Assembly (NCBI RefSeq): GCF_006345805.1
Contig: NC_043007.1
Span: 32,550,001 to 32,614,000 of the forward strand
Origin: Octopus sinensis
Taxonomy: Eukaryota
Direction of reading: 5' to 3'
Length of the DNA: 64,000 nt
Position numbers and translations under genes: made by a program
Shown: positions 7,364 to 58,299 of the stretch, in pieces
Layout: each line of letters begins with the position of its first letter
How positions within the stretch are numbered: the first letter of the stretch is position 1
Notes under the pieces: generated by a model
Seen by the model: the letters and a program-made list of their open reading frames with translations, nothing else
What the model was told of the DNA's origin: nothing
Database searches by the model: none

Positions 7364-7844
7364 CACCCTGAGGGTGGAAGATATTAAGCGACTAGAATCC
7401 TTAGATCACCTCTGTCTGCGCCACATCTTTCGTGTCCAATGGCATCACTTTGTCTCCAACAATTCGGTGCGACACCAGTGCAAAATCACCTCCCTCCGAC
7501 AAGTCATCCTAACGAGACATCTGCGTTGGCTGGGTCATGCCCTCCGTCGTCAACCAGGAGAATTCATCTACGAAGCAATTGCTCCAGCTCCCCTTCAGGA
7601 TTGGCGAAAGCGATGTGGTGGACAACAAAAAACCTGGCTGATGGCAGTCAAGGCTGATCTGGAACCCAACCTAGGCCCCCTTATCTATGGCGTTCGCCGC
7701 TGGAATAAGGAGTGGTTGGAGATCACGCAGTCGTTAGCCTCAAATCGCCAGGCCTGGTCGGTGTTTGTGAGAGATGCAGCATTGAGGATGAATGAAGCCA
7801 GCTCAAACCACCCCAGGTGAATGCTGTCTCAAGTCAAGTCAAGT
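7364..7844 (+). mobile_element. 5'-truncated RTE LINE 3' end with intact reading frame
   Basis: RHLRWLGHALRR..RKRCGGQQKTW motif, (CAAGT)3 tail, and 13 bp TSD ACTGATCTTATTC at 7351-7363 and 7845-7857. Confidence 0.9.
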
Positions 7845-8394
7845 ACTGATCTTATTCACAATGTATTTTTACAGGAAGAAAAGAAAGAAAGAAAAACACT
7901 AATAGTATAAAAGGTCAAATTATCAAGGAAAGAAAAAACCCATAACTACCTCTTCAAGGAAACAAAAAAAGGGGTAGGGGTGGGGGAGTTATGGGTTGGG
8001 CACCACAGGACAAATGGCATATTTAGCCGCACCACACAGACATGATTGCAAAGGCGTTACCACAGAGAATGGGCAGCAACACTCGCTACAACAGCCACTC
8101 CACATCATGGGGTTCATTTCTCAGACAGGCGGCAGTTATCCAGATTTTGCAGACAGACTATATGGTGGTATAATCCTATGCTCTGAAATATTGATTCCTT
8201 AAAAAAATCTATGCAAGACACAGTTTCCACCAATGAAATTTCACTTACAAAGGTATTGGTTATTCTGAGACTAAAATAGAAGACACTTGCCTAAGGTGTC
8301 ACACAGATCAAACTCCAAATTCTGTGGTTGTGAAATGAAATTCTTAACCACAGGGTCTTGCTAATAATATTGAGATAATATATTACATATAGAT

Positions 8395-14597: not shown

Positions 14598-15170
14598 CTG
14601 AAATATATGAAAATGAATTCCAATTAGAATCTTTGTATTTTCTTTTTTTCAATTCAAAATCTATTTCAAGGTTATTAAGAATTATTTAAAAACTGGAGTC
14701 ATCGAAAATACTATTCTAATTATGGTTTGTATTTGTATGTTATACTCCGAAAGGAAACAAAACATGTTTTCTTATGTTTTAATAAAAAAAAACATTTTCT
14801 AGAACAAAATTTTTTTTCTTTTAGTTTACTTTTTTTTATTTTTTTAATATTTTAGATGATAACAGATCTAATCCCATTCAATTAGCGTTCAAATCTATCG
14901 CTAGTAAAAGCAAATTTTTTACCTTGCAAATTTCATTCTCACTTCACATCTAATTGTTCAAAACGCCCATATTATAACCCAAATATTCTGTTTTATGTTC
15001 AAATTGGCTACATCCAGCTTCTCACACCTACCCCTACAATGTCATTCTAAAGCATACATCATCAGAATATTGAAGCAATGAGATTAATGCATAATTAACT
15101 GAAAACAATGTTAACGAACAAGCATTAATTTGACAGAGTGATCCCAATGCTAAAAGGTTAAAAACTTCAC

Positions 15171-15575
15171 TCTTTTACTTGTTTCAGTCATTTGACTGTG
15201 GCCATGCTGGAGCACCGTCTTTAGTCGAGCAAATCAACCCCAGGACTTATTCTTTGGAAGCCTAGTACTTATTCTATCGGTCTCTTTTTGCTTAACCGCT
15301 AAGTTACAGGGGTGTAAACACAACACCATCAGTTGTCAAACAATGTTGGGGGAACAAACACAGACACGCAAACATACTGGCACGCGCACACACACACACA
15401 CACACACACATTTACGACGGGCTTCTTTCAATTTCCGTCTATCAAATCCATTCACAAGGCTTTGGTCAGCCCGAGGCTATAGTAGAAGACACTTGCCCAA
15501 GGTGCCACGCAGTGGGGCTGAACCTGGAACCATGTGGTTGGTAAGCAAGCTACTTACCACACAGCCACTCCTACG
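15171..15575 (-). mobile_element. SINE family B (tRNA-like head, GCACCTTGGGCAAGTGTCTT CORE-like segment, internal microsatellite)
   Basis: Same family at 16411-16934(+), 30692-31060(-), 34975-35302(+), 54870-55075(-), 55084-55205(+), 56955-57335(+), 62700-62850(+), 63305-63445(-). Confidence 0.85.
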
Positions 15576-16410: not shown

Positions 16411-16576
16411 GGCACAGGAGTGGCCTGTGTGGTAGGTAGCTTGCTTACCAACCACATCATTCCAGGTTCAGTCCCACTGTGTGACACCTTGGGCAAGTGT
16501 CTTCTACTATAGCCTTGGGCTGACCAAAGCCTTGTGAGTGGATTTGGTAGACGGAAACTGAAAGAAGCCCGTCATA

Positions 16577-16647
<71 letters not shown>

Positions 16648-16666
16648 GTATATATATATATACACA

Positions 16667-16717
<51 letters not shown>

Positions 16718-16934
16718 TTACATGTCTGTGTTTGTCCCCACCCCAACATTGCTTGACAACCGATGCTGGTGTGTTTACGTCCCCATGACTTAGCAGTTCG
16801 GCAAAAGACACCAATAGAATAAGTACTAGGCTTCCAAAGAATAAGTCCTGGGGCCGATTTGCTCGACTAAAGATGGTGCTCCAGCATAGCCGCAGTCAAA
16901 TGACTGAAACAAGTAAAAGAGTAAGAGTAAAAAG
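16411..16934 (+). mobile_element. SINE family B with expanded (TA)n/(TG)n insert
   Basis: Full head-core-microsatellite-tail structure ending GACTGAAACAAGTAAAAGAG. Confidence 0.9.
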
Positions 16935-23900: not shown

Positions 23901-26206
23901 TCCAAACACCATTACATAGCCATCCCATTAATTAACACACACTATCAGATGTGCATATATGCATACACACACACACACACACACACACAAGAATATGTTC
24001 CTGGTCAAGCATGCATCCAATTAAAGAAAGTCATGCATGCATACACATAAACATATATATATAAAAAAAAACTCATACATACATTGAGTGTGTGTGTGTG
24101 TGTGTGTGAGTGTACATACGCAAACATATATAGGCACATAGATGCAAATACATATGCATGCATAAACAGAAATTATTTTCAAAAGAAATAATTTAATATC
24201 CCATTTAATTATTCAAACACACACATTTAGAAAAGTTTGTTACAGAAAGTTTCAAACGTAAAAAGCACATCTGATTGTTCACACGCTTCAATATTGTATG
24301 TCGTATATTTACGCAACTGCTGACATGTTATCGCAAAATGCAACTGATAACAACTGGAATCAGCACTTGAAGAAAAGATTAGCGAGGGAAAAATAGAAGG
24401 AAACCAATGTGAATGAAGGAAAAAAAAAACTATTAGATGCTAAATGGTAAGCAGATTGTGAGTGTTGGTTAACTAGAGCAGAAGAGCTCAAGCCAGAAGG
24501 AGTGGCCCAAAGATTTCAAAATGAAACCAACGGGCAAGTCAATGTTAGAAGAGATGCTATGAGGTGTAGAATGCAGGAAACTTCAATCAAAAGAATGAAA
24601 ATCAACACAAAAACAGAAAAAGATGATGTAAGGCTGGAAGAATGAGTAACAAAAAAAATCAAGAATATTCTGTTATTCTTTTACTTGTTTCAGGCATTTG
24701 ACCGTGGCCATGCTGGAGCACCACAAGAACAAAGTGGTTAAGTCAATTACATCGACTACAGTGCGTAACTGGTAATTTATCGACCTCGAAAGGATGAAAG
24801 GCAAAGTCAACCTCAGCAGAATTTGAACTCAGAACGCAACGGCAGACGAAATACCGCTAAGCATTTCGCCTGGCATGCTAACAATTCTGCCAGCTTGCCG
24901 CTGTGGTGAGCTTCTTACCACACAGCCTCTCCTGCGCCTGTATAACTGTTTCAGGAATGCTTCCAATTCAACATACAAATGAAGAAAACATGAAGCAACA
25001 TTACTGTGGAGATAGAAACAACTTCTATCACTACTGCATGGCCACGAATATCACATTTGAATGACTTACAAACAGATACTTTAATAACTGCAGCTATAAA
25101 GTCGAACTGCTGCCTTCTGCTTGACGAGAATTTCCATAGAACTCGAAATCCCTAACGTCAGATCCCAATAATCCCTATTATGATTATTACGATAGTGTAG
25201 GTGCAGCCAAAGGAGCATGATCAAGAAATTCACTCTGCACACATATGGATTTAGGTTCAATCTCATTGTACAGCACCTTCAGCAAATGTCCTTACTATAG
25301 CCCTGAGCTTTACAGTGGCTTAGCTGATCGTTTAAATAATGTTGTACCAAGACCCCAGAGTTCAAGTTGGGAGTGCAGTTATTCTCCCATCTTCATCTGA
25401 AGAATCTCCAAGAAACATGTGCAAATACTATTGTGATACATTGGCTAGGAGTAGAAAAACACAATACATCTGATGTTTCCCTTACTATGACATGCAATCC
25501 AAACTGGCCAGGAACTAAGGATAACTTATTTCAGGGACAAAATTCCTCACATAGACCAGACCCAACAGCAAGATGTTTTCAGTCAGAACTAAGAGAACTT
25601 TCAGATAGTATTACAAAAAGCAGGGTCTTTGTAAAGCACTGAATGATGATGATGATGAATTTCAGAAAAGGTTTCCCACATTCTCATATCTTAGTAATAG
25701 TGCATTCAGACAACAAGTTCAGAGACCTGTTGCAAATAAATAAAGTTGTCTATGCTGAAATTCTTGACACAGAAGCTGAATTTTGCTTCATGATATTATA
25801 AAAAAAAAGTACGATACATGGACTCAGTGATGAACAAAATGTGAGAGTATACTGCATGGAGAATGGACATAACCAAAAGAAGTTTCCAAAGTATTTCAAC
25901 AAGAAACAGGAACAAAAGAATGGTTATCTATTTTCTTACAAACAAGGTTCAAGGACACAGTAGTGTAAGAGACTACAAAAGAAAAGAAGGGGCCTACACA
26001 TTCAAGAGATGTTGATTAACTGAAAGCTTAAAGGGCTGAATAACACAGACCAGAGGAAAATAAGACAATGGTAGTAAGTTCCGGAGAGCAGCATTTGAAG
26101 GAAAAGAAGCTAATAGAATAAAAGGACTTGTGACTAACGAGAAGGTCAATAGAGAAACGATGCACCTGGGAAGAGAAGCAGGTGAAACATTAAACAACTT
26201 CATTAC

Positions 26207-29614: not shown

Positions 29615-31419
29615 TTAATATTTTTGAGCTGCCACTTCTTATCCTGAACTTTTGGTTCAATTAAGCAAGAATCCATCATTTCTAAGCCTGCTTTTTACTT
29701 TATTGTTCACTCTTTTTACAAGCAATGTTATTTATAAAACATGAAAACAATTTAATTTTTTTCAAAAATTTTGAACTATAATAAAAAAAAAAAAAAAATT
29801 AAAAAAAAAAAAAAGGAAATTTTACAAATTGACAAAAACTAATAAAATAAAACTGCCAAAGAGGAAACAAAAACAAAGGAAAACATTGGCAACAAAGCTG
29901 CAGTAGATGAATTAAATGATACCAACGAGAAAGAAGTTAACACGAATTTACCAGTTTGAGATAAAAGGGGTCCAATTACATTCATATTCCCAAGAAAACA
30001 CCTTGAGCACACCACAAAATCCCCTTGTCAATACAGTGTTGGGACAACTTTTTAAGTTGGAAATGATTCAAATGCTTCACTTGGTTTAAAACATGGCAAT
30101 TTGCCTGGGTCTTATTCCACGGTGTGTGGGGACTGGCATGTCAAAGAATACACCCAACATTTCCTCTGTGTGCCACAGAAAGCAAATAAGAGGATGTGGC
30201 AGAAGTTGCACTTTGACCTCATAAAACCCTCATCAGTAACAAGTACCCAAACAGACATTGGGTTGGAGGGTTGTCAACTGAGGGGTGCAAAGATATCATA
30301 TCGGCAAGGAGTAAGGGATCACCAACAGAAGGTGGATGTAGCAACAGGCTGTTACAGCGCATGCCCTCATACTACTATTTTTCTATCCCCATAACAGCCC
30401 AGGAAACTCGTTTTGCCCCATGAAAACCAGTTATAGTGCCTCCTAGATGAGAATAGAATTATAAGTGATGCCTAAGAAATGAGCCAAATGGTAGGTAGGA
30501 AACATTTTTAGTTGGTAGTAGGAAGTCACAAGCATGGTAAATTACAGTTTTGGGTTGACGCTTTGGAAGCTGTTTAGATGTTGGTTTTAGAGAAGTTCTG
30601 AAACAGTTAAAGCTTGTGCAACACTACAACGAAAGAAGCAAACTCCATTTTGTCTTTTCATTGATAAAGAGATGTGGAGCAAAACATTTCATCTTTTATC
30701 TTTTACATGTTTCAGTCATTAGGCTGTGACCATGCTGGGGCACTGCCTTGAAGAATATTACAGTCAAATGAATCAATTCCAGTACTTATTCTTTATAAGC
30801 CTGGTACTTATATCAGTCCCTTTTAATTGAACCGCTAAGTTACAGGGACGTAAACACACCAACATCAGTTGTCAAGTGGTGGTGGAGGACAAACAGACAC
30901 CAAAACACACAAACAGACTTCTTTCAGTTTCCATCTACCAAATCCAAATACAAGGCTTTGGTCATCCTGAGGCCATAGCAGAAGACACTTGCCCACGGTG
31001 CCATGCAGTGGGATTGAATCCAGAACCATGTGGTTGAGAAGCAAGCTTCTTACCACCCACCCACAAATATCAAATATTTCAGTATAGTTTAGTTGAGGAT
31101 GAGGGCATCAACTGTGCTGATGCACTCCATACTTCCATGGGAGGTGAGTCATTATTATGAAAACAAGGAGTCATATAAAAAAAGTGAAGTTTTGGAAAAA
31201 ACACTTTTACAAAGTCATGGTTGTTACTTCTAGCATGTTCAATGACCACATGAAGGCCTCCTATATTTTGTCTGCTGGGTTAACAAGAGTCAAAGTAAAC
31301 AAAGTATGCATCATTAAGGGTTGAGCTAATAAGTAAGAATTTTGAAAAACCTTATTTTCAGAGATTTTGTAGTTATTCCAAGCATGTTGGTGACAGAATT
31401 TGAAATTTTGAGAGTTTTG

Positions 31420-33300: not shown

Positions 33301-33534
33301 AGGAATGGTGGGTATTAGGGGATGAGATGTGAGAAATGCTTGATAAGACAAAAAGGGTGGGGGAGCAGAGCCCCACATATACAAGTATGGTGGTTTTTAG
33401 GACATCACTTTTGCTGTGATGGATGGGTCTTTTCAAGCACAGCAAATTACCCAGCATCATGTCATCTTCTCTATAGATCAGTTTTCACTATTTCATCCCA
33501 TGTTTGCCTGGGTTTCCCTCTTCCAGAACTTCCA

Positions 33535-33890
33535 TTCCAAGTTCCAGGTGTGGAAGCAAGGATTAGAATCGAAGGGCCTTAGAGTCAACCTAGCTAAAAC
33601 CAAAGTCCTAAGTAGGAAGGTAGACAAATCACAAACGCCTTCAGGTAGATGGCCCTGCTCGATCTGTAGAAAAGGCGTGGGTAGAAACTCTATACGATGC
33701 ACCAAGTGTAAGCTATGGACACATAAGGGGTGCAGCAATATCAAAGGAAGGCTAACTAGGAAGATAGTTTGTGTATGTGGCAGATGCTCGGGAGCAATAA
33801 ACACTGAAAATGCACAGAGACCAACTTCCGCCACATTCCAGGGAGAAAAACTAGAAGTAGTTGATAGCTTCTGTTACCTAGGTGACCAAG
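33535..33890 (+). mobile_element. RTE LINE ORF2 fragment with Cys/His finger
   Basis: WKQGLESKGLRVNLAKTKV..PCSICRKGVGRNSIRCTKCKLWTHKGCS..CGRC..LEVVDSFCYLGD. Confidence 0.85.
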
Positions 33891-34347
33891 CAAGATATTT
33901 CCCCCATGGACCTGGGAAACGAATGACACTGCTTATATGACAGTGACATGCATTTGCAACTATTACATGATGTCGAGATACAAACACACACATATACACT
34001 CCCACGTATACATGATGAGATTCTTTCAGTTTCCATCTATAAAAATTCACAAGTATGGCTTTTGTTGGCCCAGGGCTATAGCAGGAAACACAGCGAAACT
34101 GAAACCAGAACTATGTGGTTGGGAAGCAAACTTCTTGCAACACAACTATATAGACATCATATATATAGATGTCATCATCATCATCATCATCATTTAACGT
34201 CCGCTTTCCATGCTAGCATGGGTTGGACGGTTCAACTGGGGTCTGGGGAGCCCGAAAGCTGCACCAGTCCAGTCAGATCTGGCAGTGTTTCTACAGCTGG
34301 ATGCCCTTCCTAACGCCAACCACTCCGAGAGTGTAGTGGGTGATTTT

Positions 34348-34790
34348 ATGTGCCACCGACACAGGTGCCAGACGAGGCTGGCAAACGGCCACGCTCGGAT
34401 GGTGTTTTTTATGTGCCACCGACACAGGTGCCAGACGAGGCTGGCAGACGGCCACGCTCGGATGGTGTTTTTATGTGCCACCGACACAGGTGCCAGACGA
34501 GGCTGGCAGACGGCCACGCTCGGATGGTGTTTTTATGTGCCACCGACACAGGTGCCAGACGAGGCTGGCAGACGGCCACGCTCGGATGGTGTTTTTATGT
34601 GCCACCGACACAGGTGCCAGACGAGGCTGGCAGACGGCCACGCTCGGATGGTGTTTTTATGTGCCACCGACACAGGTGCCAGATGAGGCTGGCAAACGGC
34701 CACGATCGGATGGTGCTTGTTACGTGCCCACAGCACGGAGGCCAGTCGATGCGGTACTGGCTACGGCCACGTTCGGATGGTTTTCTTATG
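34348..34790 (+). repeat. Tandem array of 62 bp unit (6 near-identical + 1 diverged) inside SINE C
   Basis: Unit starts at 34348, 34411, 34473, 34535, 34597, 34659 and 34722. Confidence 0.95.
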
Positions 34791-35727
34791 TGCCACGTGC
34801 CACCGGTACCACAAAGATACAAATTCCATTGATGTTCATCTATTTTGATTTGTTTTGATTTATATATATATATACACACACACACACAAGCATAAAAAAC
34901 AAATATATATATATATATATATATATTCAAATATACGTGTGTATATAAATATTTACACACCACATATACATGTGTCTACCAACCACATAGTTCCGGGTTC
35001 AATCCCACTGCGTGGCACCTTGGCCAAAGCTCTTCTACTCTAGCCTAACGTCGACCAAAGCCTTGAATGGATTTGGTAGATGGAAACTGAAAGAAGCCTG
35101 TCGTGTGTGTGTGTGTTTATCCTCCCACCATTGTATGACAACCGTTGTTGGTGTGGTTATGTCTCCGTAACTTAATGGTCCGGCAAAAGTGACCAACAGA
35201 ATAAGTACTAGGCTTACAAAGAATAAGTCTTAGGGTCGATTTGTTCAACTAAATGTGGTGCTCCAGCATGGCCGCAATCAAATGACTGAAACAAATAAAA
35301 GAATTTGAAAAAAAAGAATATATAGATGCACACACACAATGTCAGATCACTCTTCAGTGTTACTGGTAAATACAACACTCCAACCTGTTGCATCACTGGA
35401 GTGCCTGGTTCACATGATGGAGAGGGTGATTTTTGTACAGAGAGGGGTGAAATACAGGAACATTTGAAAAGTGAATGAACTTAAAGAGAGCCAATGGCCA
35501 TCCAATAACACACACAAATATGTTTCTTCTGAAAACCTGGCTGACTTCGAGGTACCCTTTGATGTGAAAAGTCTTAGAGAAAGCACTGAAGTTTATGTAG
35601 CTACCACTCATCTTGCTATGCCAATTATTAGATTCCAGTCACAGAGATACACAGACAGGGGGATATTACTGATCACAGAACACTGACGTAATGAAGATTA
35701 TAATATTATATATATATATATATATAT

Positions 35728-35899
35728 TTATTTTATTTTATCTAGTTTCAGCTCACGAGCTGTGGCCATACTGGGGCACCGCCATTTAGCTTAGCGTGGA
35801 CACCCGATTGCCATAGAAGACCGACTACCAGGGCTCCCATCCTCAAACCGGTCAACCAACCAAGCCTCCGAGTAGCTGGATTACAGGAGCACGCCACTA
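35728..35899 (-). pseudogene. 7SL (SRP RNA) 5'-half retrocopy fused to SINE/LINE-type 3' tail
   Basis: The minus strand GTGGCGTGCTCCTGTAATCCAGCTACTCGGAGGC...ATCGGGTGTCCACGCTAAGCT aligns by eye to about nt 12-120 of metazoan 7SL. It continues into GGCGGTGCCCCAGTATGGCCACAGC..CTGAAACTAGATAAAATAAAATAAA. Confidence 0.8.
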
Positions 35900-36178
35900 G
35901 AAATATGTATAACATATACAAGTATACATAACTACAAATGTATGGGTATACATATATTCTTATATGTATATACATAATACATATACCTTATTTAAATGTA
36001 TTTATACATAATACATACACACACATATATATATACACACACTCGTGTATACTTATACATATATACACACACACATAGATATACCTGAATATAATTCCAT
36101 ATACACACATGCAAGCATAGTCAAATATATCCAATTACATAATTATGTGCACACAGACACATCTATCTATACAATTAA

Positions 36179-36233
<55 letters not shown>

Positions 36234-37545
36234 AATTTCATTTATACATGCATATGTATATCTGCATTTACACAAGTATATACATATATACCCATATATT
36301 TATGCATGCACATTCATACACACACACAAACAAATATATACACGACCACGCATTCACATATGCATATCTATCTATCTATCTGTCTCTATACACATGTGAC
36401 ATACACGTGTATACACAGATTGTACAAACAGAGGCCTAATTACACAATTATAAATCATGTACACGTATGTGCATAGGCATACACGAGAGCAATATACACA
36501 AACACGCATATGGCGAGCTTTCTACATACATGAATATGCGATAGATTTACGATATTTGCTTCTTTATCTGTCATGCCCCCCCCCTCACCTGCTTTGAATG
36601 GCCACAGCTCATGTGGGGTAGGTGCAAAATATTAACAACGTTCCAGAGAAAACATAAAGGCTAAGGAATTCATGTTTTTTTTTTTCTTCCTTTTCTTTTA
36701 ATCATAATTCAGTCTCATGTCAGCGAAGACTTTCTATGTATTTACTTGTCCTACATTCCTCGCAATATTGGCCACTGCTTACCCTGCAGTCATCATCCCC
36801 TTGTGCTCGCTGAATAATATAAAGGTGTCGCCTATGTCAACCAGTTTCACGTGTACGTATTGTGCGCGCACACACACACACACACGTCAATAGGGGTTGA
36901 GGAAGAAATACATCAGAGAACGTTCTTCATATCTCTGTGTGTGTGTTAATTGTTCCTAAAAAACTCATATGCAACTTGTGAAAAATTATCAATGCTGTGC
37001 TATGGGTCAGGCTTTACTTATACACACACCTAAGCTTATAAATTCATTTATTAGATACTTAGCAAATATAATTTTGCACGTAAATTCTCACTTTGTCCCT
37101 TATGTGTATGAGTGTGTGTGTAGTGTCATAGTGTAATTTCTCTGTCTTTATTTTACAAAGTTAAAAAACACGCTGGTACATAGGGAATTTTATCATAATC
37201 TATAATTTGAATAAATACAACGTATTCTAAATATTAACTGCTTGACATTGAAAATTACAGTTAGAGCAATTTAATCAGAGTCAGTTTTAAACCTTTAGAC
37301 AGTAACAAGTCTTCACTTTTGATAAGGTTTATTGTGGATGATGAATGAAGGAGGCTAAATTTTGACTTGACACAAACTAATATCATTTTCGGTTTTTTTT
37401 TTAAGAATATTATGTTGCTACAAATTAATGCAACAATTCTCATCGCCTAAAACTAATTGAAAATATTCTCAATCTTCGAAATATTACATCGTCTGAAAAT
37501 CTTTGAATTAATAACAAAAGCAGAAAAAAATTCACTTTAAAGTGA

Positions 37546-37770
37546 TGTATGAAAATAGAACTCTCTTAAATCATTATAATATATGTGTGTGTGTATAATA
37601 TATACACACACAGGCATACACATGCATATATATATATATATACACATGTATATATACATGTATGAAAATAGAATTCTCTTAAATCATAAATATGTATGCG
37701 TGTGTGTGTATATATATATATATACAGACAGGCATACACATGCATATATATACACACATGTATACATACA
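37546..37770. repeat. Tandem duplication, ~112 bp period
   Basis: ATGTATGAAAATAGAA(C/T)TCTCTTAAATCAT occurs twice with microsatellite spacers. Confidence 0.85.
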
Positions 37771-38177
37771 TGTACACACTATGTTATATGTTTTTAAAGT
37801 GTTGAAAGAGAACTTCTGTTGGTATGAAGCAAGAATTTAAAATGTTGGTTTTTCGACAAGGAAACCACTTTGTGTTCGACCTCTACTTTTAAACTCGTAT
37901 TTAAAATATGAAAGATTTTTTTTTTCTCCACTCAACAACTGACGTCGGTTAAAATAACAAAATAAAAACACTAGTGAACCTTGGATCTCCTACATTTAGT
38001 TATCTGGGTCATGCAAGGTCTAAAACAGTGAAAAGGGAGTGAGTAAAAGAAAACTTGTCAAGAGAGAGAAAGAAATTGAGGTTACTACTAAGAGAAGAAG
38101 AAAAAAAAACTGTTGGGAAGAACTGAAGTTAAGAGAAATAAAAGACAAAATAAGAAGAAAAAACTCTTTTGACTCAC

Positions 38178-46630: not shown

Positions 46631-47039
46631 CCTTCACACCCCTACAGATAGTTTAATCAGAAAAGAAGAAAATTCCCATTTAACCAGCCTGTTATGGACA
46701 GTGAGAATGCTGAAAAGTGCAGTAGAGATCTCGTATAAATATCAGATAAAGGGTAAAGACTCCCTTCGGTCAAGAATGACCATGGGATCACACCTAGAAA
46801 GTTCCCCTCTGAGGCACAAGTCCGGGCAAGGTTGTTTATGGAAGAACAGCAGTTGCCCATGCATATCAGCCTCCCCTCTCATTACCGCCAATGTTATCCA
46901 AGGGAAACGCAAGGGCCGATACAGCTTGGCACCAGTGATGTCACAACTCATTTCTACAGCCAAGTGAATTGGAGTGACATGAAAATAAAGTATCTTGCTC
47001 AAGAACACAACACATAGCCTTCCCCTTTTTTGCCTTACC

Positions 47040-47245
47040 TGTTTTGTCCACTACCTTTTCCAATGTATGTTGGTACCAAGTATCCGTAACCTCATATCCA
47101 TACTTACAGCATAGTAGCCAGTGGAGGTTTGGGGCTTCTTTGTTGTGTCTACACTTGTACTCTTTCTGTGCAAGACTTTCACAAGCACTAACAATGTGAG
47201 TCACACTTTCATCTCTCTTCCCACACATTCTGCAGAGATCTGATG
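47040..47245 (-). mobile_element. R4/Dong-type (RLE-clade) non-LTR retrotransposon C-terminal relic
   Basis: CRMCGKRDESVTHIVSAC..LAQKEYKCRHN...LHWLLCCKYG....WYQH: CCHC knuckle plus RHN motif. Confidence 0.75.
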
Positions 47246-48180
47246 CATTATTATAGGGTGGTGAGCTGCTAGAATCATTAACACACTGGACAAAATTCTT
47301 AGTGACATTTTGCCCATTTCTACATTCTGAGTTCAAATTCTACCAAGGTCGATAAATTAAGTACCAGTGAAACACCGGGGATCAATGTAACCAACTCATC
47401 CCCTCCTCCAAAATTTCAAGCCTTGTACCTATTAAGTAGAAAGGATTGTTATTATTATTTTCTTTCGTTGGACACTAAACTCTGCTTGTGAAGATCTGTT
47501 GAGGCAAGTGAAATCGAAATCGAAATCAGACTCGATGACTGGTATCTGTGCTAGTGGAGCACTAAGAGCACCATCCCAGCGTGATCGTTGCCAGAGCAGC
47601 TAACTGGCTTCCATGCCGGTGGCACGTAAAAAGCACCATTCGAGCGTGATTGTTACCAGCATCGCCTTGCTGGCGCATGAAAAGACATTCGAGCGAGGTC
47701 GTTGCCAGTGCCACTGGACTGGCTCCTGTGCAGGCGGCACGTAAAAAACACCATTTGAGCATGCCAGTACCGCATGACTGGCCCTTGTGCCGGTGGCATG
47801 TAAAAGTACCCACTACACTCCGGAGCAGTTGGCATTAGGAGGGGCATCCAGCTGTAGAAACATTGCTAGATCAGATTGGAGTCTGTTGCAGCCACCTGGT
47901 TCGCCAATCCTCAGTCAAATCGTCCAACCCATGCCAGCATGGAAAGCGGATGTTAAACAATGATGATGATGATGATGATTAAGGTAGCAAGCTGGCATAA
48001 TTGGCACACTTGGCAAAATGTTCATTAGCATTTCACCTGTCTTTATGTTCCAAATTCTAATTCCACTGAAATAAACTTTGCTCTTCATCCTTTCAGGAGT
48101 CCATAAAATAAGTACCAGTTGCACACTGGGGTCAATGTAATCAACTAGTCCCCTCCCCACAAATTTTAGGCCTTGTGCCC

Positions 48181-50045: not shown

Positions 50046-50590
50046 GCACGTAAATCTGTCTAGTTCTACTTCTCCAACATAAATTACATACATATATCTT
50101 CAAGCTCTTAGTTATCTATCTCTAAGGAAACCACGAAATATGACAACTGTACTCAAAGATTAAACATGGTTACAAATAATTCAACATCATTGAAGTTGTA
50201 GTGACAACTCTATGAAGAATATGTAAAAGTTCAAAAGCTGAATCTTATTCAGAATTCACAAACATAATGCCTTTCATGGACAACTGATTTTAGAAATTCT
50301 CTCCAGGCAAAATAATATGTGTAAAGCAAATCTAACAATGAACATAAAAAACAAATTTCTTCTATATTTGGTATAAACATCAGTCAGTGTTATTTTCTTA
50401 GTGCTACATTTTAGCATTGTTGTTTGGAAAAGAGAAAAGAATAAACAAAAAGAGAATGGGGGAAAAAAAAAGAAGAAAAGATGAGAAATTTAACGTCATA
50501 ATCTTTAGCAGACATACTAACAGAACATGTTAGATGTCCAAGTGATAGGAATATTGTATGTATTTATATACACACAGATATATGTATATC

Positions 50591-50667
<77 letters not shown>

Positions 50668-50703
50668 GTATATATATATGTATATACATATATGCATACA
50701 TAC

Positions 50704-50839
50704 ACACACACACACTTGTATATATAGGTGCATATGTACGTATATATTTGTGTGTGTGTGTATATATATATATGTATATATACACACACACACAAATATA
50801 TACGTACATATGCACCTATATATACAAGTGTGTGTGTGT
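50704..50839. repeat. Near-perfect palindrome inside (CA/TA)n microsatellite field 50560-51050
   Basis: CTTGTATATATAGGTGCATATGTACGTATATATTTG and its exact reverse complement. Confidence 0.9.
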
Positions 50840-51085
50840 ATGTATATATATGTATATATACACATACACACATATATATATAGATAGATAGATACATACA
50901 TTCATATACATGTGTGTGTATGTATGCATATATAAACATATATACACATACACACACACACATATATACACACATATTTATACATACATATACACAAACA
51001 TGTACACATACATACATACATACATATATATATATATACACACACAAACACATTTTTTAATCTTATTTTTTCTTTTATATATATA

Positions 51086-53910: not shown

Positions 53911-53984
53911 TGACATATATATACTTACATACAAACATGCATACACACATATAAACATACACACACATACAGACATACATCTAT

Positions 53985-54490
53985 GTGTATGTGTTTGTGT
54001 GTGTTCTTGTTTTCACATTTTGTGATATAAACATGCATACACATATACACACATACAGACACACATATACATGCATATATACACACACATACATACACAC
54101 ATGCATACATACATCTTAGTGTATGTGTGCGTGTTTGTGTTCTTGTTTTCACATTGTGTGATACAAACATGCATACACACATACAAACATGCATACACAC
54201 ACACACACACATACATACATATATACATACATACATATTTGTGTGTGTGTGTTCCTGTTTTCACATTGTGTGATAGTTGTAAATGCACTTGACTATGATA
54301 CACGTGATGTCCTTTGGTTCCAATCTTCTGTGAGAAAGAAAATGGCCTGGCACTGGAGAAATATTATGCTATTTGGAAACAGGTAACAGTCAAAGACAGG
54401 AAGGCTATACAGCCATTGATAATTTTCTTCAACAAATTCCGTTTGACTCATGCCGCCATGGCAAAGTACATGTCAAAGCAATGATGATGA
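53985..54490 (+). repeat. Triplicated TGTTCTTGTTTTCACATT(T/G)TGTGATA block in microsatellite, leading into SINE family D
   Basis: Copies near 54000, 54135 and 54250. Family D (ATATTACCTTGCTTGGAAACAGG) also at ~13940-14160, 28080-28290, 62860-63060 and 63090-63230(-). Confidence 0.7.
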
Positions 54491-55264
54491 TGATGATCAT
54501 CATGAAGATATACATACTTACACACATACATATACACATACATACATACACACATACATACATTCATACATACATACATACACACATACATACATACATA
54601 CACACATACATACACACATACATACATACATACATACATGTGTGTGTTGTGTAATCCATATTTAGAACTTCATTCTTTATACCTGAAAAGAGAAAATTGC
54701 AAAGAGAACTTGCAAGATTCGGTTCAGTGATCTCGTTAGTTAGAAAGGTCACAGAGTACAGAGAGAAGAACCAGACCAAATGTCTTTCTTTATGAATTCT
54801 TTAACAACGAAAAATAATCTACAAAGTCTCTTGATTTCTTTCTCCCCACCCTACCACCCTATATATACTCTCTTTTACTTGTTTCAGTCATTTGACTGTG
54901 GCCATGCCGGAGCATCACCTTTAGTCGAGCAAATTGACCCCAGGACTTATTCTTTGTAAGCCTAGTACTTATTCTATCGGTCTCTTTTGTTGAACTGCTA
55001 AGTTACAGGGACGTAAACACACCAGCAACGATTATCAAGCGATGGTGAGGGGACAAACAGAGATACACAAACAATATATATACATGGTTCTGGGTTCAGT
55101 CCCACTGCATGGCACCTTGGGCAAGTGTCTTCTATTATAGCCTTGGACCGACCAAAGCCTTGTGAGTGGATTTGGTAGATGGAAACTGACAGAAGCCTGT
55201 CGTGTATGTATGTATATATATATATATTGTTTGTGTTCCTAAGGTAATTTTCGATGTAATTATT

Positions 55265-56169: not shown

Positions 56170-56956
56170 AGTTGGAAAAGAGACAGAGACACAGCCAAGT
56201 AGAAGGCTTATGAAAGATTTATTGATATAATTACATGCATCTGTGTGGGTCATATGTTTGCTGTTAACCATGGTGAAGCAGTTCATGAACAGCAGTATGT
56301 TAGAATCTGTGAAGGTGGTGAGCTGGCAGAATCATTAGCACGCCGGGCGAAACGCTTAGCAGTATTTCATCTGCCGCTACGTTCTGAGTTCAAATTCTGC
56401 CGAGGTTGACTTTGCCTTTCATCCTTTCGGGGTCGATAAATTAAGTACCACTTACGCACTGGGGTCGATGTAATCGACTTAATCCGTTTGTTTGTTCCTG
56501 TTTGTCCTCTCTGTGTTTAGCCCCTTGTGGTTAATAAAGAAATAGGTGTTAGAATCTGTGCAATGTGGCTGGTGCTGTGTACATAGAGATGTTGTTGACG
56601 ACGTTAGTGAGAGACATGATGGTGGCGACAAAGATGGGGGTCACTGTAATGCTGTTGGACGGGTGTTGTCTTGCGTCGTTGCTGGAACTGGCTGTGTTGT
56701 GCGGTCAGTTGCTAGACCTTTATAGGTCTGGAACCAACAGGCCCCCAAAACGTGGAGAAGTTGAGTAATAGTAGTCTAAAATTGGGGTTGTGAATAGACT
56801 GTCTCACGTGATTTTATTTGGAGTCTTCGATTGGTTAGGTTGCATATTGGCATGATAGAGTAAGAGACAAATTGTGCCAATACTAACCAATCAGAGTAGT
56901 GGACACAACAGGGTCCAAATAACATCCAAAGGCTAGCTGTTATCTGCTGTGTTCAC
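56170..56956 (-). mobile_element. Putative solo LTR (interrupted by SINE A)
   Basis: On minus: TGTGAACA start, ATTGG/CCAAT boxes, CACGTG, TATAAA, then AATAAA and TTTCCA-AC-TGGT end. No TSD confirmed. Confidence 0.35.
56312..56546 (+). mobile_element. Full-length young SINE A
   Basis: 14 bp TSD TGTTAGAATCTGTG at 56298-56311 and 56547-56560. Confidence 0.92.
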
Positions 56957-58299
56957 AGGAGTGGCTGTGTGGTAAGTAGCTTGCTAACCATGCACATGGT
57001 TCCGGGTTCAGTCCCACTGCGTGGCATCTTGGGCAAGTGTCTTCTATAGCCCCGGGTCGGCCAATGCCTTGTGAGTGGATTTGGTAGACGGAAACTGAAA
57101 GAAGCCTGTCGTATATATGTATTTATATATATATGTGTGTGTGTTTGTCCCCCTAGCATTGCTTGACAACCGATGCTGGTGTGTTTACGTCCCCGTCACT
57201 TAGCGGTTCGGCAAAAAAGAGACCAATAGAATAAGTACTGGGCTTACAAAGAATAAGTCCCGGGGTCGATTTGCTCGACTAAAGGCGGTGCTCCAGCATG
57301 GCCGCAGTCAAATGACTGAAACAAGTAAAAGAGAGAAAGAAAGAGAGAGGAATTTCACTAGAGCGTACGCTACAAAGGGAAATACCAGGAAACCCTTTCT
57401 AATTACAAACCCCTTTACAGGAGTGTAGCAGGTGCTCTTTATGTGGTGCCAGTACAGATGATATTTTTATGTGATGCTGGCACAGGTGCTATTTATGTGG
57501 CACCAGCCCAGGTGCTTTTTATGTGGTGCCAGCACAGGTGCTTTTTACATTGCACCAGCATGGGCGCTTTTAATGGGTTACTGGGCTTGGGTTGATCATA
57601 TCAGTTATGGTAGGCTGTATAGAAATTTTGAGTGAAAAGCATTTATTTATTTTACCTTTTTTTTTTGAGCCCTAGGTCTTACAAGGCCAGTTACCTGTTT
57701 TCCATGGCTTATAAGTGACTGAAATCACAACATTCTCAGTGTATAGGTTTGCAGGGTCCAAGGCAAGGGAAAGGGACAAGTTGATTATATCAATCTCAGT
57801 ACTTGACTCTAAAGAGATGAAAGGTCAAGTTGACTTTGACAGGATTTGAACTTAGAACAATCAGAGGTAGAAGAAATGCTGTTAAGCATTTTGTCCAACA
57901 TGATAACGATTCTGCCAGCTTGCTGCCTTAGTTATTTATTCGGCAACTTAAAATAAAGTCTTTAGAAAATTTCCTAGGAATAGCTTTACTCAAGGAAAAA
58001 AATTTGGAGTGTGGTTGTTCATTTTAGTGAATATTCTTTTTTGCAGAAGGCGTTCTTCGGAAATTTACGTGTGATTATGATAAGTTGTTAAATCATTGAG
58101 GGTTTTCAGTCAAAAGTCTTTATTCCTTCAGTCACTGTACTTGACTAACATCAAACTACCTTCCACATCACCAATAATGTTTTCAGTCAACGTTTAGATT
58201 TCGGAGTTGCCTCCCTTATTTTCCTGATCTGAATTTATCTTTAATTATATTTTCCCTCATTATATTTATAATTAAAATTTATTATTTTTTTTTTGGTCA

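Follow-up and report, generated by a model that had tools for sequence, protein, structure and literature searches.

A single locus on the minus strand of the 64-kb window, meaning the whole stretch of 64,000 nucleotides of Octopus sinensis DNA that we analysed, joins the 5' part of a 7SL (SRP) RNA directly to a LINE/SINE-type tail. This chimeric anatomy is real and lies far beyond chance. Read from the sequence, the minus-strand layout is ...ATACATATTTC / TA GTGGCGTGCTCCTGTAATCCAGCTACTCGGAGGC...GGGTGTCCACGCTAAGCT / AAATGGCGGTGCCCCAGTATGGCCACAGCTCGTGAGCTGAAAC TAG (ATAAA)3 (TA)n, and its features are collected in Table 1. We give about even chances to the reading that template switching produced the element as a chimeric retrocopy, now dead and either alone or present in very few copies. 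A first-pass annotation of this DNA had described the locus as either a one-off chimera or a member of an Alu-convergent family. That choice stands, with the lone-chimera branch somewhat favoured and the chimeric anatomy borne out, but convergence on Alu is unsupported, as the element has no 3' 7SL sequence and no central deletion.

Table 1. Features of the focal element and related features of the window (positions are those of the window).
Feature	Position	Strand	Basis or remark
7SL (SRP) RNA-derived head	35788..35897	-	7SL nt 11-120, contiguous and ungapped; cmscan RF00017, BLASTN, alignment
Box B equivalent (AGCCCTGGTAG, 7SL nt 73-83)	35825..35835	-	Position from alignment; box assignment putative
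Junction	35788..35789	-	CT from either parent (7SL nt 119-120 or SINE-B ..GACTAAAGG..), a 2-nt microhomology; alignments
LINE-recognition-type tail module (AAATGGCGGTGCCCCAGTATGGCCACAGCTCGTGAGCTGAAAC)	35745..35787	-	~45 nt, two hairpins; BLASTN, fuzzy pattern search
Tail hairpin 1 (UGGC.GGUGC/CCCA/GUAU.GCCA)	35763..35784	-	RNA fold; 91.5% of cells paired
Tail hairpin 2 (CAGCUC-GU-GAGCUG)	35749..35762	-	RNA fold, pair counts
3' terminal tandem repeat (ATAAA)3	35727..35741	-	Read from sequence
(TA)n microsatellite abutting 3' end	35707..35726	.	Possibly target or tail-derived; masks any TSD
SINE-B, nearest copy	34978..35302	+	Opposite orientation, ~430 bp from focal element
SINE-B, other copies	15166-15572, 16413-16921, 54868-55237, 56940-57345	-, +, -, +	
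SINE-B body variant (B30)	30692-31064	-	Tail module at same start base
Different SINE family (SINE-C) with matching tail	~24677-24900	-	Same start base
Microsatellite Rfam artefacts	50500-51050, 37570-37775, 53930-54650, 36000-36320, 16600-16720	both	

The head was compared with full-length 7SL genes from three contigs, belonging to Potamilus streckersoni (GCA_016746295.1), a mollusc-like ENA contig and Sepia pharaonis (GCA_903632075.3), which scored 211-270 bits on RF00017. In BLASTN searches, each gene gave one ungapped match to the window, with 7SL nt 11-120 corresponding to positions 35897-35788. Identity was 81.8% for P. streckersoni (E = 2e-26), 80.0% for the ENA contig (E = 1e-23), and 73.6% for S. 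pharaonis (E = 6e-14). The first-pass annotation had placed a minus-strand match of about 110 nt to the 5' half of 7SL here, in agreement with these alignments. The ENA-contig gene is 91% identical to that of the mussel P. streckersoni, and real 7SL genes of different lineages are 78-81% identical to one another. Since the focal identities are in a similar range, the head is a copy of a genuine 7SL RNA that has decayed to a moderate degree. Helix 4, the 5' strand of helix 5, and the conserved UGUAAU motif all fall within it, and no other 7SL-like locus occurs in the 64-kb window.

Rfam searches led to the same region. The Metazoa_SRP model (RF00017), which the first-pass annotation had named as the check on the 7SL identity, matched positions 35901..35790 of the minus strand over model positions 1 to ~121 (29.3 bits, E = 5.8e-6, in a 401-nt search), with nothing convincing past model position ~121. 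When the whole window was compared with all 4227 Rfam families, RF00017 scored 24.8 bits (E = 0.019). Both scores are below the gathering score of 70, such that the signal appears in E-value mode only and a default gathering-threshold scan of the whole window was empty. In E-value mode, Metazoa_SRP on the minus strand was the sole structured-RNA signal at the locus other than microsatellites. Sub-threshold matches to mir-5014 (87 bits), mir-297, mir-466, mir-3149, and others were rejected as artefacts of (TA)n/(TG)n microsatellites occurring on both strands. Neither BLASTN with the three real 7SL genes nor Rfam gave any match to 7SL nt 121-299 anywhere in the 64-kb window. The S domain and the 3' end are thus absent and, together with the missing 5' end and bit scores of 29.3 and 24.8 against the gathering score of 70, this led us to reject a functional SRP RNA gene.

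At the other end of the head, alignment to real 7SL begins at nt 11, so the first ~10 nt are missing, as had been noticed earlier. The two bases at 35898-35899 (TA) may be 7SL nt 9-10. In 7SL, the Pol III promoter consists of box A at nt ~6-15 and box B at nt ~76-86 (PMC7245038). Loss of nt 1-10 deprives helix 3 of its 5' strand and box A of half its length, leaving the focal copy with half of box A and the box-B position rather than the intact internal promoter of a SINE1. With these parts of box A and helix 3 missing, the focal copy would not be expected to be transcribed, and it is probably dead. The head has CpA at two sites where all three mollusc 7SL genes have CpG (GCGATC to GCAATC and CCGCGC to CCACGC), which suggests neutral decay. 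The whole element folds no better than shuffled sequences (z = -0.10).

The antisense frame of the element was compared with a representative library of 1.84 billion proteins, and the 26 matches were antisense translations of full 7SL genes plus chance matches to WD40-repeat proteins and a few other repetitive proteins. The closest 7SL translation in the library was P0002 (UniParc UPI0006959755), with 82% amino-acid identity over the head. None of the 26 matches spans the junction. Three of the 7SL translations were placed on contigs, which supplied the genes used for BLASTN, and the identities of the assemblies were taken from papers. Among the matches listed, 14 are spurious 7SL-antisense ORFs from many animals. 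A related case is found in S. pharaonis (CAHIKZ030005499.1, GCA_903632075.3; L003, 829-6654), where four full-length 7SL genes, repeated in tandem every ~1.84 kb, are together annotated as one protein-coding gene of 283 amino acids (P0001) whose product is an antisense 7SL translation. The conserved 7SL CpG at window positions 35806-35811 reads GCGATC in mussel and cuttlefish, GCAATC in the focal element, and GTGATC as implied by P0002, meaning that the decay versions of both strands are seen between the focal copy and P0002. Because of the GTGATC implied at this site, P0002 may itself be a 7SL pseudogene rather than a functional gene.

Homology to 7SL ends after nt 120, exactly where the first-pass annotation had put the junction, which can be written as CTAAGCT-AAATGGCGGTGCCCC or CTAAGCT-AAATGGCGG. 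From there on the sequence, AAATGG, follows that of SINE-B (..GACTAAA(T)GG..). The junction is direct, with an overlap of 2 nt only and neither poly(A) nor filler. Here, a sense small RNA lies 5' of a retroelement 3' end, with minimal microhomology and no poly(A) or TSD between them. This is the structure of a small-RNA/retroelement template-switch chimera, and its unusual point is that 7SL was entered internally and not at its 3' end.

The tail module is homologous to the tail of SINE family B in this window, as first proposed from the letters alone, and BLASTN and pattern searches found it in seven other copies. In total the window holds eight tail modules, at 15215-, 16876+, 24721-, 30743-, 35258+, 35779- (focal), 54915-, and 57288+, where the sign gives the strand. 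The seven non-focal tails belong to an abundant tRNA-type SINE (SINE-B), its body variant, and one different family. Across these seven copies, which represent at least three body types, the module starts at the identical base (GGYGGTGC) and the sequence upstream differs by type. The element therefore has the LINE-recognisable 3' part general to SINEs, insofar as the module is common to seven SINE copies of three body types. A 25-mer from the focal tail (GGCGGTGCCCCAGTATGGCCACAGC) had one other match in the window at three or fewer mismatches and none in 100 shuffles. Overall identity between the focal tail and SINE-B tails was ~78-80%, rising to ~89% against the SINE-B consensus outside hairpin 2.

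RNA folding predicted two hairpins in the module of the focal element and of the best SINE-B copies. Across the alignment, 91.9% of cells were paired in the two-hairpin arrangement, versus 17-47% when the partners were slid. Hairpin 2 reads CAGUC-AAAU-GACUG, or single-base variants of it, in the seven other tails. In the focal tail, the top of this hairpin is replaced as a block (TCAAATGA to CTCGTGAG) with the stem preserved, and two adjacent pairs carry compensatory double changes, U-A to C-G and C-G to U-A (columns 76/83 and 77/82). The focal variant of hairpin 2 (CAGCTCGTGAGCTGAAAC) has no second copy in the window. Given the replaced block and a terminal repeat that differs, (ATAAA)3 as opposed to the GTAAAAGA of SINE-B, which is sometimes repeated, the focal tail was evidently not copied from a typical SINE-B. 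It comes from a relative of SINE-B whose tail structure is intact, be it a different SINE or the LINE itself.

SINE-B is a tRNA-type SINE of ~350 bp with about eight copies in the window, or roughly one per 8 kb. ARAGORN found no tRNA in the window, indicating that the tRNA-like heads of these SINEs are too diverged for calling. SINE-B, its variant, and SINE-C form a modular 'jigsaw' in which different heads and bodies sit on one tail, and a fragment of a SINE-B head lies directly upstream of SINE-C at ~24905-24940. Three or four heads meet the tail at the same base, which suggests the base of hairpin 1 as a recurrent recombination or switch point.

Several other repeats and open reading frames occur in the window. 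A minisatellite with a 62-bp unit (34339-34796, 7.3 copies, 92% matches) is the source of long repetitive ORFs at 34210-34858 and has a LINE-like ORF on one side and, on the other, the SINE-B copy adjoining the focal element. At 7374-7848 (+), an ORF of 148 amino acids corresponds to the C-terminal part of a LINE reverse transcriptase and precedes a (CAAGT)3 terminal repeat. It had no Pfam match and no homologue in the protein collection, and we rejected this LINE as the partner LINE because its 3' end is without the SINE tail module. Another retroelement-like ORF, at 33416-33940 (+), has a weak match to a PHD/C1-type zinc finger (E = 7.6e-4, below the Pfam cut-off), and a third, at 46941-47336 (-), has a CxxC...H motif typical of LINE C-termini, judged by eye only.

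The first-pass annotation had the element ending in an A-rich run. An A-rich repeat is indeed present, but it is not poly(A) and instead consists of (ATAAA)3 followed by the (TA)n microsatellite. No TSD was found, as had been reported, with the k-mers of at least 6 nt shared by the two flanks being AT-repeat words only and both flanks being TA-rich and of low complexity. Searches with the flanks revealed neither a second copy nor a paralogous empty site in the window.

Template switching during target-primed reverse transcription is the accepted origin of new SINEs, and 5' truncation is common in LINE-mediated insertions. Under the chimeric-retrocopy reading, a LINE reverse transcriptase would have started target-primed reverse transcription on an RNA with the two-hairpin tail module, presumably a SINE or LINE akin to SINE-B but of a separate lineage. 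After copying the (ATAAA)n end and the ~45-nt module, the enzyme would have left its template at the base of hairpin 1 and resumed inside 7SL (nt 120, with the 2-nt CT overlap), an abundant cellular RNA, which would then have been copied towards its 5' end until the insertion stopped at nt 11. Both the template switch and the lack of amplification of the focal element are what we infer from the anatomy. This reading is favoured by the ungapped head of 7SL nt 11-120 at a single 7SL-like locus in 64 kb, by the direct junction with its 2-nt overlap and no poly(A) or filler, and by the loss of nt 1-10, which resembles a LINE-type 5' truncation.

We also considered whether related elements are on record. 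A curated 2026 repeat table for Octopus vulgaris, the most detailed one, has tRNA (tRNA-Deu and tRNA-CORE), 5S, U, and U-L1 classes of SINE and no 7SL/Alu class, with 76 kb in total under 'Other SINE' and 1279 SINE families left unclassified (PMC13282606 supplement). Our literature search returned no paper that connects 7SL SINEs with cephalopods or molluscs, and none that prints the SINE sequences. A 21-mer across the junction had no match in JGI metagenome contigs. This result carries no weight because the SINE-tail control, a 28-mer of the SINE-B tail that is exact in four window copies, likewise had no match in the metagenome, GTDB, or IMG/VR, implying that no host DNA is present there. 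Similarly, the two open frames of the element had no homologue candidates in a protein collection that lacks the ORFs of the host window, making this weak evidence: as a control, 0 of 10 window ORFs were on record, and an ORF 1.8 kb away and the 75-amino-acid ORF across the element were also absent.

The main rival to a lone retrocopy is an as yet undescribed SINE family with many copies, to which the locus would belong as a 5'-truncated member. Such a family would have a head made of the 5' ~120 nt of 7SL (box A and box B) and a hairpin tail of the stringent LINE type. We regard this as possible but less likely. The modules run from small-RNA promoter head to LINE-recognition tail to short 3' tandem repeat, which is exactly the order of a SINE, and the tail starts at the base used by three other SINE body types, forming the minimal functional module expected of a selected element. 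The two compensatory double changes of hairpin 2, unique among the eight window tails, suggest a separate functional tail lineage, and a tail that is intact and compensated, and not a decayed SINE-B, could equally be the family's own. There is a similar origin in the hagfish SINE1, in which 7SL was fused to an older tRNA-SINE with an RTE tail (PMC7245038). A priori, one 64-kb window is much likelier to hold a family member than a unique chimera, and the unclassified O. vulgaris SINE families could hide a 7SL-headed one. However, a large family is disfavoured by the ratio of one head to eight tails in the window, where about eight copies of SINE-B accompany the one focal copy. It is further disfavoured by the lack of the 3' Alu-domain strand that all known 7SL SINEs keep, without which an Alu domain cannot be built. 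No 7SL class is given in the O. vulgaris table, and no paper found ties 7SL SINEs to cephalopods or molluscs, both of which argue in the same direction, as does the lack of a junction-spanning ORF in protein libraries, although this last point is weak evidence. The focal copy is also without 7SL nt 1-10, even if a full-length master could exist. Worded more widely, to include an element standing at the origin of such a family, the proposal that the locus belongs to an undescribed cephalopod family of 7SL-headed SINEs, as a 5'-truncated member or at its start, is in our estimation rather unlikely.

A fusion at the level of DNA strikes us as improbable. Here a 7SL retropseudogene or gene fragment and a SINE in the same orientation would have been joined by deletion or non-homologous repair, removing 7SL nt 121-299 along with the SINE head and body. 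The 2-nt microhomology suits end joining as well as it does template switching, a SINE density of about one per 8 kb makes adjacency plausible, and no TSD brackets the unit. Yet such a fusion needs two independent insertions in the same orientation and a deletion that ends within a few bases of the module boundary, the tail variant is without another copy in the window, and the sequence nearby shows neither a SINE body nor the 3' half of 7SL. The absence of the 7SL 3' half downstream also led us to reject a SINE inserted into a 7SL pseudogene. Finally, we see hardly any chance that the locus is an artefact, whether by chance similarity, contamination with human Alu or 7SL, or a chimeric assembly, even though the Rfam score is below the gathering threshold. 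The BLASTN match to mollusc 7SL (E = 2e-26) stands against chance similarity, and the head is nearer to bivalve 7SL (82%) and to P0002 (82% at the amino-acid level) than to other animal 7SL genes in the library. The head carries nt 64-75 and 84-120, which are absent from Alu, and both flanks belong to the host genome, as does the tail, the nearest SINE-B copy lying at a distance of 430 bp. Human contamination is rejected on these grounds, in line with the first-pass annotation, which had pointed to the segment GGGTGTCC..CTAAG. This segment corresponds to 7SL nt ~103-118, within the part lost from Euarchontoglires SINE1 (PMC7245038).

What a lone chimera or a family would mean follows from the history of these elements. 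The mobile element that has done best in the human genome is a 7SL-derived SINE, and both known 7SL SINE lineages are thought to have begun as a chimera of 7SL RNA and an existing retroelement tail. The locus shows that a 7SL head joined to a LINE-recognition module also arises where tailed SINEs saturate the genome of an invertebrate. Should it have remained a single copy, its truncated promoter and missing 3' Alu-domain strand illustrate the reasons for which most chimeras of this sort fail. If instead it belongs to a family, it would be the first SINE1 outside vertebrates, in an invertebrate, and a third independent origin of 7SL SINEs. The build of that family would be unlike Alu or the hagfish element, combining an undeleted 5' ~120 nt and a stringent-LINE hairpin tail with no 3' Alu-domain strand. 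It would then be a natural experiment on which parts of 7SL are needed, testing whether the success of a 7SL SINE requires a foldable Alu domain.

When placed in the context of known systems, the element shares features with several and coincides with none. It has in common with the SINEs of its own window (SINE-B, the B30 variant, and SINE-C) the ~45-nt two-hairpin tail, the start base of that tail, and a similar AAA-rich terminal repeat. Those SINEs have tRNA-like heads, bodies of ~350 nt, and many copies, whereas the focal element is headed by 7SL, lacks a body, and carries a compensated hairpin 2. Mammalian U6/L1 chimeras resemble it in having a sense Pol III small RNA at the 5' side joined directly to a retroelement 3' end with minimal microhomology. 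The classical U6/L1 switch is to the 3' end of the small RNA, with the whole RNA copied, and small-RNA/LINE template-switch events are typically unique. In contrast, the focal switch point is internal, at 7SL nt 120, and the tail donor is a hairpin-dependent LINE/SINE. The U-L1 repeat class of O. vulgaris is an example of the small-RNA/LINE kind of chimera. Retropseudogenes of 7SL, such as P7SL_MD of marsupials and the guinea pig expansion, are also retroposed 7SL copies, but they consist of full-length 7SL with poly(A), whereas the focal head is an internal 5' piece of 110 nt to which a foreign tail is joined (PMC7245038).

No 7SL-derived SINEs are known outside Euarchontoglires and hagfish (PMC7245038; PMC13023118, 2026), as the first-pass annotation had correctly stated. 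Every known amplifying 7SL SINE keeps the 3' Alu-domain strand (PMC7245038; PMC13023118), and folding of the Alu domain has been described by Kojima as a constraint on 7SL SINEs (PMC7245038). Euarchontoglires SINE1 elements retain 7SL nt 1-63, 76-83, and 267-299 (PMC7245038). The focal element has the 7SL-derived 5' part of a SINE1 (RF00017, E = 5.8e-6; BLASTN to three genes, with E-values down to 2e-26). However, it lacks the arrangement of 7SL ends around a central deletion of ~150-180 nt, having a contiguous nt 11-120 and no nt 121-299. With Alu, B1, and FLAM it has a 7SL-descended head, the UGUAAU motif, and the CCAGCUACUCGG core in common. Alu and B1 are made of 7SL parts only plus poly(A) and are mobilised by the relaxed L1, whereas the focal element has nt 64-75 and 84-120, a hairpin tail, and no 3' 7SL sequence. 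Its likeness to the hagfish SINE1-1_EBu extends further, since that element, which arose by fusing 7SL to an older tRNA-SINE with an RTE tail, also joins a 7SL 5' part to older-SINE material with the tail of a non-L1 stringent LINE, and, in place of poly(A), has a short tandem repeat at its 3' end (Kojima 2020, PMC7245038). SINE1-1_EBu differs in having the 5' ~96 nt plus ~44 nt of the 3' end of 7SL, which can fold into an Alu domain, and in having an intact box A and 2363 full-length copies, compared with the contiguous nt 11-120, truncated box A, and one copy in the window of the focal element (PMC7245038). Because the focal copy departs from SINE1 in its Alu-domain architecture and in its box A, we do not file it as a member of that group; what it resembles is the founding chimera of a SINE1.
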